Assembly: GCA_044892505.1 (NCBI GenBank)
Contig: CM097883.1
Location: 391,592,001 to 391,656,000 of the forward strand
Origin: Schmidtea nova
Taxonomy: Eukaryota
Reading direction: 5' to 3'
Length of the DNA stretch: 64,000 nt
Below the pieces are notes generated by a model. The model made no database searches, was not told the DNA's origin, and saw only the letters and a program-made list of their open reading frames with translations. Below are positions 1,641 through 34,378 of the stretch, piece after piece (the stretch's first letter is position 1; each line of letters begins with the position of its first letter). Position numbers and translations under genes: made by a program.

Positions 1641-2750
1641 CTATATCTATATATATATATATATATATATACAGTCCCGTGCAAATTAATCCGGCTAAAT
1701 AAAATTAAATATATCGCCATACAGAATCGTAAAAAACTAGAATTTGCCACTTCCTAAGAAATTTACAAATCTTGCGGAGCATTCGTGGTTTACTAGCACT
1801 CCTATTCAGGAACCTGTTTGTTAAAAACTACGAATTTGTCAATCCAAGAGAACCGCTACTAAAAACCTGATCAAGATCGAGATTTTCCGACCTTTTGAAT
1901 AATTCACAATTTAAAAGTTAATATAATGTTGTTTGGCAGGTGCTGGATTTTCGATCATGCTCTAATCGTCCCATACCAGGTATTTTATATTTTTCTTATA
2001 CATATTGTTAATGCTTATATCAATTAATTTATTGAAAATTTATTATCATTTAATATTATTAAAATTTTTGAATTTTATTTGTATTTTACTCTGAATTTAG
2101 TAATTTATTGTTATTATAGGACACTAAAATTTTAACCCCAGTAATCCCTATTCATTTTTCATTTGTGAAAAATTATGTCACATAAACCTATACTACCTAA
2201 AATTATTATTATTATTATTATTATTAAGAATAATTTATTTTTAATTTTCTATTTTTAATTAATTCGATTTCCATTCATTCTGATTTCAGCATAGTACTAT
2301 GTGGCTAAGTAGCTTAGGTGGATCGCTGTTCTATTGAAGTCATTCAGCCGGCCAGCCCATATTTATATCTGAGGTGACGTCCATAAATCTATGATCCCTT
2401 CATCCTATACATTAATGTATAGCGAGCAATATCTTGGTCAAGGGCAAGGTATTTACAAAAAAATGTTATGTCCAGAATCTTATTGAATTATATTTGTAAT
2501 TTCGTAATTGATTCGAAGACAAAAAAATTTAAATTATTATTTTTATTACAGTATTTTATTTGAATTTATAATATTGCGTATTAAATTGACTTGCTTATTT
2601 TCAGGTTTCGTTTCAAAATCTTCATGTTGATTTTGTTCTTCAGAAAATTTGCATATTATCTGTCAATACTTTTTGGCCAACATTCATTGTAAAATACTAC
2701 ATAATTTATATTGGTTCAAATCTATGAGTACATCCCTGTATTTATAATTA

Positions 2751-2959
2751 GGGGCATTTAAAAATTACGAAAAAAATAAGCATTATTCAAAAATTGAGAA
2801 AAAAATGCATTATTTAAAATTACGAAAAAAAATTACATAAATTAGTTAACGCGAAAATTTTATGCAATAAGTTAAAAAAATTTCGCGTTTACTAATTTAT
2901 GAAATTTTTTTTCTTAATTTTAAATAATGCTTATTTTTTTCGTAATTTTTAAATGCCCC
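2751..2959. mobile_element. MITE with perfect 37-bp terminal inverted repeats
   Basis: ggggcatttaaaaattacgaaaaaaataagcattatt at 2751 and its exact reverse complement ending 2959; the GGGG..ATTACG end resembles the terminus at 46985-47009. TSD not clean. Confidence 0.8.
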
Positions 2960-2962
2960 AAA

Positions 2963-3895
2963 GAATAATTGAGGAATCCTTTGACATTCTAATCAAAGCC
3001 GGAATTGAAAAATGGGCTAATTCAATTTTTCCAATAAGACAGCGGTTCCCAAAGTTTTTTCACCACGGCACCCTTTTTTATTTTTCAAATTTTTGACGGA
3101 ACCCTAGATTGTTCGCGCAATGCAAATGTTGCCAGATCTAGTTTTTATATAGTGAATGAAATGGAATTGGCACATATGAAATAGAATGGAAATGCATTTT
3201 TGAAGACAATATCAATGGAATTGAAAAAGAAAGTTAAATTGGATCTAATAAAATCGAGAATTATTTATTAATCTTTTTTATAAATCTTTTTTTTATAAAT
3301 TATTTATTTACAAAAAGTTCGCGGAACCCCTGCTATCAGTACACGGAACCCCGGGGTTACGTGGAACCCACTTTGAGAAACGCTGCAATAAGAAGATATG
3401 GAAAACACACTTCAAATGCAGCTGAATCGATGAATTCTGCAATAAAGAAGTTTATAGATATGGATATATTTAATTTCATAATTTACATAAACAATTACAC
3501 TTTGAAAATGATGAATTTGAGAAGAAACGAAGTTTTAATAGGAAGAATAACCAAGGTAGCTGAATCGAAACTGAAGAAAAATTTAGACAAAGGAAAAATA
3601 CTTAGTTTGAAAAGATCTAATAAATATATCTTTCTTGTTGATGATAAGTGCCTAGTGAACATTCGAGATAAAAGTTACGATTGCAAAGAATATTTTCATT
3701 TAGGAATTCCTTGCTCTCATATTTGCTCAGTTATCTACTTTCTCAGATTATATTTATATAGTTTTGTTTCTGAAAATTTGGCAATCGTATGAAACTAGCA
3801 TTCTTCCTTTAAGTGCGAAAATCTGACGAAAGATAATGTTCAGCACCTAGAGATAAAAGAGGACGTGGAAGACCAAAAATCAAGCGCTTAAGTGC
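2963..3895 (+). pseudogene. Mutator/MULE transposase C-terminal fragment with SWIM zinc finger, interrupted by a hAT MITE
   Basis: Removing the MITE gives IEESFDILIKAGIEKWANSIFPIRRYGKHTSNAAESMNS...DCKEYFHLGIPCSH... and downstream KRGRGRPKIKR; the TSNxAESxN and GIPCSH motifs are MULE-type. Confidence 0.75.
3040..3385. mobile_element. hAT-type MITE
   Basis: Ends cagcggttcccaaa / tttgagaaacgctg; perfect 8-bp TSD caataaga at 3032-3039 and 3386-3393. Confidence 0.9.
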
Positions 3896-10833: not shown

Positions 10834-11357
10834 ATGGTTATTTCTATCATCATTCCTATTATAAATATAACTAATAGTATTATTATGGTTATCATTAGTG
10901 TTGAGGATACATAAATAATAAATTAAATATTGGAACAAATAAATAAAATGATTGAGGGAAAATGAACAGCATAAATTATGTGATGTTAAAAAATACGAAA
11001 AAAAGATTTTTGAAAGACAAAACTTAAAAAACGAAAAAATGGCAAGGAAACAAAGGAAATCGAATAAATTACACAGAAAGGTCATTCCTAATTAAAAAGT
11101 ATAAAAAGGCAAAAGGGAATTTTGAAATAAAAAAAGAAAAAATTATATATTGAGAGCCTGCCAGAGATATCGGAATGATAGGGAAAAAAGTCAGAACAAC
11201 ATAAAGGAAAATAGGGCATATCTTGTCAGTAGTCAGAGATAAGACGAGACTAGTGGAAGAAGGCAAAAATAAAAGTTGAAAAACAAATTTGTTTTTCAAG
11301 TACCACAAAATTTTACGTTATATAAAAGCAGAAGTCATCGCAGTAGAAAAGAAGGTA

Positions 11358-13296: not shown

Positions 13297-31625
<18,329 letters not shown>

Positions 31626-33037
31626 AAGTTAGAAAATTATGTCTGACATCAAATTTTATTTCATTTGTTTGAGAAAATGAATCATTGTGTTGAATGAATT
31701 TGATTTATTTATTTCGTTTATCTATAATAAATGGTTTACTTGAACTTGTCTTTAATTTGTTAATAAATCTGCTTGATTGCGAATGGGCCGAATTGCTATC
31801 CACGTTTCCAAGGGAACCGTGCAATCATAGTTTACCACTGTGTGCCTGTTACAGTACAGCGTTAAAAATGTTGCACAATTGGCAAATACATGGAAAAATC
31901 AAATGCCGTTACCAGAGTTGCTCTGATATATTGTAACGGGTTCCAAGACTGTCGTAGAAGATTTCTGTCCCTTTTCGTCTCTCATTTATTTAACATTCAT
32001 CCAATAATCGTAACTCCTGGAGAATCATAACAATTTGTGGAGATAGTTTACTTCATTGTATCGTCATCGTATTTTATCATAATCCTTTATCAACAAACAA
32101 TTTAATCAGAAAAACAAACTAAACTATAATTTTTTACAACAATAAAAACAAAACGAAACAGAAAATATTATTGTTAAGTAATCTGAATAATTGGTTGTCT
32201 TAAATCGATTGATTCTTATTCTTTACTCTTTCCGAACCAGATCTTCTAGTCTGGATTCCCCACAGCGTCGTTTATACACAAATAAAGATTTACCGAGACA
32301 AAAATGATATAGAGAATTTATATAACTTTATGCTTACTATATATTTGTGTGCAAAACATTTTGTTATTTATTAAACTTTTCACAGACCAGTGTTTGTCTT
32401 TTTGTTTATATAGGACATCAAGTTGAATAAAAATTCGAAAACTAAAAATAGCATTTTTAGTTGGGTTAATATTACTTCTACTATTAAAATAAATGTCTTT
32501 GCGATTCCTTTCCTGATGAAGTGCAGAAGATGTTCATTTGAGCGAAGTTGATTTACGAGGTGGATGCATAGTCTCGATAACTTTTATTATGTCAGAACTT
32601 TTGTATAGTTGTGAAAAATCAATGAGCTTTATATCGATACAAATAATTGCTGTAATAAAATATTAATAATTTTAATTTGAACAACCTTGTGCTTGGCCAA
32701 GCCACTTCTCCAGGTATAAGATGAAGCATGATTGGATGTTTGCGCTCATTTCAATGAAAAAATGGATCAGAAAGCTGAATAAACCCTGGATAACTAATGA
32801 CTCACCGAAGTGACTAATGATGGGACAACATATCGCTGGACAATAATCAGGCGTGTGGAAATTCTGATTAACCCCTTTCTTCATGAATTTTTTGTTTATA
32901 TTTAAAAAATATTTTTAAGGTGTAAAATTGAAAAATAAAAGACACGTATTTTTTATTTTTGAATTTTTTATATTTTTATATATTCAAAATCTTGACAGTT
33001 TTTGGTACTAAATTAGAATAAACAGTGGTGAATTTTG

Positions 33038-33257
33038 GGTGTGCGCATTGTCTCTATGATAATTTTGGTTATCGCGTCTGTGTGCGCGTAGCTTAAAGAT
33101 TTTGTACTGCGTCTGTGTGCGTGGTTGTAGGTTTGTGCTTTTGCGTCTGTGTGCGCATTTCATTTTTTGTGTTGTTCTCGCGTCCGTGTGCGCATTGAGA
33201 AATTGCTATCAGCGTCTGTGTGCGCTGCGATAAAGACAAGCTCGCGTCTGTGTGCGC
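33038..33257 (+). repeat. Array of six 14-bp GCGTCTGTGTGCGC repeats plus one partial, with unlike 18-23-nt spacers
   Basis: Full copies at 33074, 33109, 33143, 33180, 33212, 33244; partial at about 33038. Confidence 0.9.
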
Positions 33258-33328
33258 TTTGAACGTTTTTTTGTTGTTTTATTAATCGAGTTTTTTTTTT
33301 GGAATTTACGAATATTCTGGGCTGGAAA

Positions 33329-33787
33329 ATGGAGATACCTAAATCTTTACTAATGAAAAGTGCAATTCAAAATGAAGATTATACGGAATTGGATGAATGG
33401 CCTCTTCTCGATTATAAAGAATCACATGAACCTGATGATAATTTTGAAACGTTTCAAAAAGCCATGATGTATATTCAGAGCCGACGATATTCAGAAAACA
33501 GCAGCAACATTTCATGATCATTATTGACTATTCTAATATCAATTTACAACGATTCAGAAGTGTCTTTGAGGACGGATTTAGCTAAATCATTGGTCACATT
33601 TACAAAGATGTGCACCGCAAAAGTTATAAAAGGAGATTATGACTGCAAAAAATGTTTCACTGTGCCTGATGCGATACCATTTATTCATGATGCAAATAAA
33701 CAATTCAACGACGTTATACAAATCCTTGAAGCGTGCTGGTTGCAACTTAAGTGTTGCAACTTAAGAATGTTACCAGAAACAAAATAA
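33329..33787 (+). pseudogene. Unrecognised cargo ORF (about 152 codons) with one in-frame TGA at 33515-33517
   Basis: Track ORFs 33299-33517 and 33524-33787 share a frame; first ATG at 33329; protein-like composition (MEIPKSLLMKSAIQNEDY...DYDCKKCFTVPD...ILEACWLQLK). No family recognised. Confidence 0.5.
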
Positions 33788-34162
33788 TATTTTAATGAAA
33801 AAAGAATATTTTTGAGTGTTAATTAATTATGTTCATATATGAACACTCATGCAGAAAGGGGTTAATAAAAAACTATATATATTCATATTTATATTAATTA
33901 TATGGTATGTGATAATTTCATTTTTTTAAAAATTATTATAATGAGTGATGTGACAGGATTTTCACCTTTATTCTATTTGCATGGAATAAAGAAAATCGGT
34001 CTAGAATAAATAAATAAAAAAACATTTGGAAAATTGAATTTATAAAAATCTTCTAACTAGAAGCTCAAAGCGTAATGGAAATGTCTAGATTATAATTGAG
34101 AAAATATATTGTGTTAGATTATGTAAATTATATTTGATCTTATTTAGCTGGATTCTACTTAA

Positions 34163-34378
34163 CCCTCTAATGCCACAATTTATTTCTGTTTTCTCTTAAA
34201 AAACGCACTTCGAACTGATGCACTACTATAACGGACTGTTATACAAATAAAAAAACTAATGCATAGCCTACTATTCGACTACAATGTGGCAAGAAAAAGT
34301 TATGGATAACAGTTTAGATGTTCATGCTATCATAGTTTTGGGAAGGCCCGCCTTGAGGCGGATTAAGGTATTAGAGGG
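34163..34378. mobile_element. 216-bp piggyBac-type MITE
   Basis: ttaa-ccctctaatgcc ... ggtattagaggg-ttaa. Confidence 0.8.

Follow-up and report, generated by a model that had tools for sequence, protein, structure and literature searches.

A composite of 998 bp in the genome of Schmidtea nova very probably represents a nested transposon, in which a fragment of a BEL/Pao LTR lies inside a piggyBac-derived MITE. The composite occupies positions 32868–33865 of the window, i.e., the whole 64-kb stretch C2:391592001–391656000 of the schNov1 assembly (1.25-Gb genome), to which all positions below refer unless another locus is named. The first-pass annotation had seen in it a self-contained array-plus-cargo cassette and thus a gene-carrying, non-autonomous piggyBac family. 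As a description of the sequence this stands: TTAA duplications are present on both sides by direct reading, 15-bp inverted ends (CCCCTTTCT…) are paired by a repeat finder, six copies of the 14-mer GCGTCTGTGTGCGC are found on the + strand at 33074–33257 where shuffling expects 0, and a frame of about 152 codons runs from an ATG at 33329 to a TAA at 33785–33787 with a single TGA in between (Table 1). Each of these features (TTAA, TIRs, array, and frame) is far above chance. It is the meaning assigned to them that fails, as a gene-carrying family is contradicted both by junctions that are unique in the genome and by an interior that is a truncated LTR. The locus instead combines two transposons of known kinds, one inserted into the other in an ordinary way, and a new class is not supported.

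Table 1. Features of the composite, with positions in the window and the evidence for each.
Feature	Position	Strand	Evidence
TTAA target-site duplication, left	32868..32871	.	TTAA on both sides of every aligned family member
MITE left arm, including TIR 32872-32886	32872..33025	+	Genome matches, 27-mer count, family alignment
BEL/Pao LTR, first 716 bp of ~970	33026..33741	+	29 other copies; full two-LTR element maps here only
LTR motif array: half motif and six GCGTCTGTGTGCGC cores, with unlike spacers	33039..33257	+	Repeat finder, motif search
LTR ORF, codons 1-137 of 222, with copy-specific TGA at 33515-33517	33329..33741	+	Comparison with other LTR copies
Right junction: GGTT overlap, then 14-bp tandem duplication of MITE sequence	33738..33765	+	Repeat family D7, MITE alignment, LTR continuation
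MITE right arm, including TIR 33847-33861	33752 (about)..33861	+	40 scored genome matches, 96-98% identical; family alignment
TTAA target-site duplication, right	33862..33865	.	Direct reading, family alignment

The outer parts and their piggyBac-derived MITE family

Judged from their sequence, the outer parts of the composite (32872–33025 and about 33752–33861) are the two arms of one MITE of ~250 bp derived from piggyBac. Searched alone against the genome, the left part (32867–32991) returned 40 scored matches, the best of them 96–99% identical, and the right part (33750–33865) returned 40 as well, with the best 96–98% identical. The two parts adjoin in many loci, where they form a TTAA-flanked unit of ~245–255 bp, and a 27-mer made of the TTAA and the left TIR has 265 genome matches at ≤2 mismatches, compared to 0 for its control. 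The sequence previously described as an AT-rich spacer is indeed present, but it is the left arm of this MITE and not a separate part of a cassette.

The piggyBac nature of the ends, also proposed earlier, is borne out by the TTAA and the CCC..GGG TIRs of all aligned members and by a longer relative with a decayed PF13843 transposase. TTAA is found on both sides of the composite copy and of 14/14 aligned family members. The TIRs of the family (CCCCTTTCTGCATGA / TCATGCAGAAAGGGG) are perfect, while the left end of the composite (CCCCTTTCTTCATGA) and its right end (TCATGCAGAAAGGGG) differ at one of 15 nt, the composite copy having a T at 32881 where the family has a G. Across the 64-kb window, TTAACCCCTTTCT occurs only at these two inverted ends.

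Two relatives retain parts of a transposase gene. One (L037, 1501–2857) is an internally deleted element of 1.36 kb with the same ends, in which the transposase frame is reduced to N- and C-terminal parts. The other (L042, 1501–3124; the fetched locus covers the left end only) has the same TTAA and left end, followed by a frameshifted and stop-ridden DDE_Tnp_1_7 (PF13843) gene that is recognized in three pieces (E 1e-10, 2e-9, and 8.5e-6). Separately, positions 22117–22254 (+) of the window are weakly similar at the protein level to the end of the L042 DDE domain (28% identity over 46 residues, E 1e-4, window-only search), and a different piggyBac family may have left this stretch behind.

Short non-autonomous piggyBac elements are known from other genomes, with human MER85 and MER75 as examples. 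The family described here is similar to piggyBac-derived MITEs in its TTAA duplication, its short CCC...GGG inverted ends, its length of ~250 bp, its hundreds of copies, and its derivation from an element with the same ends that carried a transposase and was internally deleted. It is otherwise ordinary, and the difference lies in the composite copy, which holds a foreign insert of 727 bp.

The interior and its BEL/Pao source family

The interior of the composite (33026–33741), which includes both the array and most of the frame, corresponds to the first 716 bp of a BEL/Pao LTR of ~970 bp. A genome search with the whole composite yielded 1,283 first-look candidates, and the best 40 of these, which were scored, match the query solely in its interior (from 144–453 to 874) and never in its first 143 or last 124 bases. 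Among 29 fetched LTR copies, the closest are 96–98% identical to the interior, and all extend ~257 bp beyond a sharp edge at position 33741. The left edge of these other copies is the terminus TGGTGAATT, equivalent to position 33026. What had been taken for cargo hence starts exactly at the TG terminus of an LTR and reads as a 3'-truncated copy of it; the ~257 bp missing from the composite include the AATAAA near the LTR end, which in the full LTR is located ~40 bp before the 3' end.

The source family is best illustrated by an element of 6,081 bp (C1:539607641–539613721), whose two LTRs (copies 5.1 kb apart) are 99.3% identical. This element has TG...CA ends, a 5-bp target duplication (GTGTC), a PBS beginning TGGTAGCAGAGCG after the 5' LTR, and a PPT (AAGAAGGGGGGAA) before the 3' LTR, and when aligned in full to the window it matches 33026–33741 only. 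Its internal region includes a piece of HSP90 (4e-15), ubiquitin (1e-27), a DUF1759 gag (1e-10, above curated cut-off), and zf-CCHC, along with a protease with weak, below-cut-off matches to Asp_protease_2 (4e-4) and DUF1758 (0.077). The polymerase is absent from this internal region, which has four in-frame stops. The HSP90 fragment and ubiquitin are found in the gag frame just upstream of DUF1759 (L067:1854–2912, i.e., C1:539608854–539609912).

In longer copies with the same LTR, Integrase_H2C2, rve, and DUF5641 adjoin the 3' LTR: one locus (L012) displays DUF5641 (E 7e-19) and another (L026) Integrase_H2C2 (5e-5) and rve (1.4e-5), the latter two slightly below cut-off, in each case directly upstream of a 3' LTR of this family. 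A 35-mer from the start of the ORF has 74 genome matches, at least 12 of which are in pairs 4–9 kb apart. Based on its LTR structure, its DUF1759 gag, and its DUF5641 integrase, in loci outside the pol centre, the source family can thus be assigned to BEL/Pao, with both long and internally deleted members. It is similar to BEL/Pao elements in its TG..CA LTRs, 5-bp duplication, PBS, PPT, DUF1759 gag, CCHC knuckle, and integrase with a DUF5641 tail, and may share an aspartyl protease with them (weak, below-cut-off matches). It differs from them in an LTR that holds a 222-codon ORF, the C-terminal part of which appears to resemble dead R2 proteins, and in the ubiquitin and HSP90 piece ahead of gag.

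At L003:1440–1509 and 2481–3720 (C1:96338988–96341268), AT-rich minisatellites flank one LTR copy, with a (TAATAA)n-like array to its left and TTTACTATTTATTA-like units over >1 kb to its right. In several further loci, too, the LTR is followed by minisatellites of this type.

The array and the ORF of the LTR

The GCGTCTGTGTGCGC cores of the array are nearly invariant and lie 32–37 nt apart, with spacers that differ from one another, and a half motif is found at 33039–33046. Genome-wide, the 14-mer has 10,873 exact matches, often paired 4.5–5.4 kb apart, compared to 0 for the reversed control, while the number of cores per LTR copy ranges from 0 to 6. This pattern identifies the 14-mer, at the level of sequence, as a motif common to many LTRs. 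The "promoter-like array" reported earlier is present, but belongs to no self-contained cassette: it is the upstream array of the LTR, ahead of the LTR ORF. We infer that it acts as the U3 enhancer/promoter of the LTR, and a U3 that contains the array, with the ORF in a long R, would fit both the order of array and ORF and the position of the AATAAA close to the 3' end.

Elsewhere in the window (27639–28170, − strand), the 14-mer recurs in a looser array (28006–28146, with one mismatch in each unit), upstream of an 81-codon frame in which a piece of S-adenosylmethionine decarboxylase is recognized (PF01536, E 2.4e-18). The unit of ~900 bp right after this array has 1,372 genome candidates, of which the best 40 scored are 85–92% identical, and looks like another repeat family with a host-gene piece.

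In full LTRs, the LTR ORF has 222 codons and reaches the LTR end. It is open in 15/29 other copies, and the TGA of the composite reads TCA elsewhere. The supposed orphan cargo gene is thus the ORF that belongs to the LTR, truncated at codon 137 and marked by a private TCA>TGA, with its last 15 codons and stop taken from the MITE. Such an ORF can be considered dead in the composite copy, which retains almost only the orphan N-terminal part, the R2-like part (residues ~125–206) being nearly all missing. A diverged piggyBac transposase was rejected as an identity for this frame, which belongs to the LTR and resembles none of the transposase pieces in the two MITE relatives. Of the stop-free copies and the selection that the first-pass annotation proposed to look for, the former are the 15/29 open copies. 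For the latter, pooled pairwise Nei-Gojobori estimates for 21 natural gap-free copies gave a pN/pS of 0.44 in frame vs 0.62 and 0.85 in the shifted frames, which is a weak hint of constraint on the ORF as the pairs are non-independent.

The LTR ORF had zero direct matches to Pfam and zero matches in a word-based protein search, a PDB sequence search returned chance matches only, the ESM Atlas provided only weak HEAT/ARM-like leads (0.82, below useful score), and a single-sequence AlphaFold model was unusable (pLDDT 35). An exhaustive HMMER search of 1.84 billion representatives returned a single match (E 1.4e-4), the protein P0001, which is GenBank AFJ24826.1 from S. mediterranea, annotated as "RRM2" (ribonucleotide reductase M2). 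This protein is a clear but divergent member of Ribonuc_red_sm (7e-31) that, by sequence reading, is without the radical tyrosine and some of the iron ligands. Residues ~125–206 of the ORF are similar to P0001 (pairwise E 4e-13, z 22) and to a second dead-R2-like planarian protein, P0002 (z 9), and an hhalign comparison of the ORF to the R2 profile gave E 5.6e-4 at 30% probability. Residues 1–124 have a z of about 0, and no detectable relatives in the searches run. The C-terminal part of the LTR ORF appears to resemble catalytically dead ribonucleotide-reductase R2 proteins. In the NIHSE motif of the ORF a Leu replaces the His, so that its product is not an enzyme.

Intronless frames similar to P0001 are highly repeated in S. 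nova: there are 763 candidates, and all 138 of those that were scored fell below 1e-48. These look-alikes (at least 138) display 53–80% identity, are mostly stop-free, and are scattered over all three S. nova chromosomes. Because they are repeated and intronless, AFJ24826.1 may itself be a transposon-borne dead R2 and not a host enzyme gene. As an analogy only, a long ORF inside the LTR, open in about half of the copies, recalls sag of MMTV, an ORF within the U3 of a retroviral LTR. The two have no sequence relation, and the planarian composite copy is truncated and stopped.

Nesting, uniqueness, and origin of the composite

In the family alignment, intact MITEs are uninterrupted across the insertion point, reading AACAG(G/T)GTTGCAACTTAAG and ...AGAATAAACAG(G/T)GTTGCAACTTAAGAATG..., whereas the composite has 727 bases at this position. 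Contigs from four public, independent runs (ATAC-seq libraries, probably those made for the genome paper) include a high-depth join from 33025 to 33753 with one G between, which stems from many ordinary MITE copies. Both junctions of the composite are unique: a left-junction 25-mer and a right-junction 24-mer each have one occurrence at ≤2 mismatches across 1.25 Gb, and the composite is therefore a single locus and not a family.

The right junction is structured. Where the LTR normally continues GCTGGTTTTCTTGG, the composite reads GCTGGTTGCAACTTAAG, then TGTTGCAACTTAAG, then AATG..., and the GGTT at this point occurs in the LTR as well as in the MITE (CAGGGTTGCAAC). Fourteen bases of the MITE (GGTTGCAACTTAAG) are found twice in tandem (GGTTGCAACTTAAG / TGTTGCAACTTAAG, 13/14 identical), where intact MITEs hold one copy. 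No 5-bp target duplication was found around the LTR fragment, hence an integrase-made insertion is something we infer and do not see.

In the same four public runs, the loose ends of contigs at 32500–34200 carry the Nextera adapter CTGTCTCTTATACACATCT. Summed contig depth pools all family copies and is no measure of level; it peaks over the array, over some stretches of the LTR ORF, and over the right end of the MITE. No joint skipping the whole element, i.e., no empty site, was detected among the short contigs of these runs, which cannot show absence.

The most probable scenario would begin with the insertion of a non-autonomous piggyBac MITE of ~250 bp at a TTAA. A BEL/Pao element or its cDNA would then have entered this MITE between ...AATAAACAG and (G/T)GTTGCAAC, an event that could have taken place at this locus or in a parent MITE copy before transposition. 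Only the first 716 bp of the 5' LTR remain; the rest would have been lost by deletion or repair, and the LTR (...GCTGGTT) would have been joined to the MITE (GGTTGCAAC) at a 4-nt microhomology, leaving the 14-bp tandem duplication. The route we favor for these steps is an integration at AACAG, followed by a microhomology deletion that would have taken away the remainder of the element as well as the second target-duplication copy, along with a duplication by slippage. The ending of the "orphan gene" is simply 15 chance codons of MITE sequence.

The same junctions could also be the product of a break inside the MITE, repaired by end joining that captured a linear piece of BEL/Pao cDNA and added a templated copy of 14 bp from the flank, with no integrase insertion and later deletion. 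In yeast, Ty1 cDNA is known to be captured at breaks in this way, and the lack of a 5-bp duplication, the exact LTR terminus on the left, the GGTT microhomology on the right, and the local 14-bp duplication form the type of footprint typical of alternative end joining. We nevertheless regard this route as rather unlikely: integration followed by microhomology deletion and slippage duplication yields an identical sequence, so that the two are not separable here, and the MITE itself is no special source of breaks, piggyBac excision being precise and needing no gap repair. Both routes lead to an LTR fragment nested in a MITE, and this would not be the case if the assembly had misjoined the two. 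A chimera of this kind might be suspected because both components are repeats and because the MITE/LTR junctions are bridged by no listed short-read contig from the four public runs, yet contigs are expected to break in repeats. It appears highly improbable given that both MITE arms are in the right order and orientation inside a 250-bp repeat, that the junction is structured in a way unlike a repeat collapse, that the left flank is connected to the MITE by contigs of independent runs (32750–32907), and that the assembly is reported to be chromosome-scale and of high quality (PMC11410931).

Transposon ends around a non-transposase sequence are what the composite shares with Pack-MULE- and Helitron-type elements, and a non-autonomous piggyBac family that captured and moved a promoter array with a cargo gene would be a counterpart of these. 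Such families amplify a captured piece of a host gene, so that many copies share both the ends and the cargo. The composite is unique in its genome, and its "cargo" is the LTR of another transposon. The genome-wide check for other copies found none, with both junctions single and 0/40 of the best interior matches reaching into piggyBac-side sequence; several copies with the same ends and captured segment are thus not observed. Nor is the cargo a piece of a host gene, since it is an LTR from its terminus onwards, truncated such that the host-like, R2-related segment is almost wholly missing, and the ORF it carries is dead. Intact TTAA and TIRs (bar the one TIR mismatch) would make the 998-bp unit mobilisable in principle, and in the source element the interior does include a long ORF and a promoter-like array, but this scenario remains very improbable.

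For the nested insertion we favor, the result is mostly a correction: an array that points into an ORF marks a BEL/Pao LTR in S. nova, with no need for a new cassette, and where TTAA/TIR ends enclose such an array, nesting may be all that they mean. As the 14-mer alone is found at 10,873 sites, many similar array/ORF finds in S. nova should be resolvable likewise as BEL/Pao LTRs. The locus also provides a clean example of an LTR fragment joined via microhomology with a small templated duplication. Beyond this locus, we tentatively suggest, as a doubtful but conceivable extension, that a large BEL/Pao clade of Schmidtea could use the 14-mer array and the LTR ORF, with its orphan N-terminal half and dead-R2-like C-terminal half, as functional parts under selection. 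The former might then serve many LTRs as a common enhancer, possibly in dividing stem cells, and the latter might encode an accessory protein from the long R/leader. If true, the GenBank "RRM2" AFJ24826.1 of S. mediterranea would be a transposon product. In a weaker variant of this suggestion, the composite, with its nearly intact ends, could still be moved by a piggyBac transposase and so spread the LTR promoter. Overall, the source family fits a picture of BEL/Pao elements in planarians that have taken up host-gene pieces, including R2-like, ubiquitin, and HSP90 sequences.
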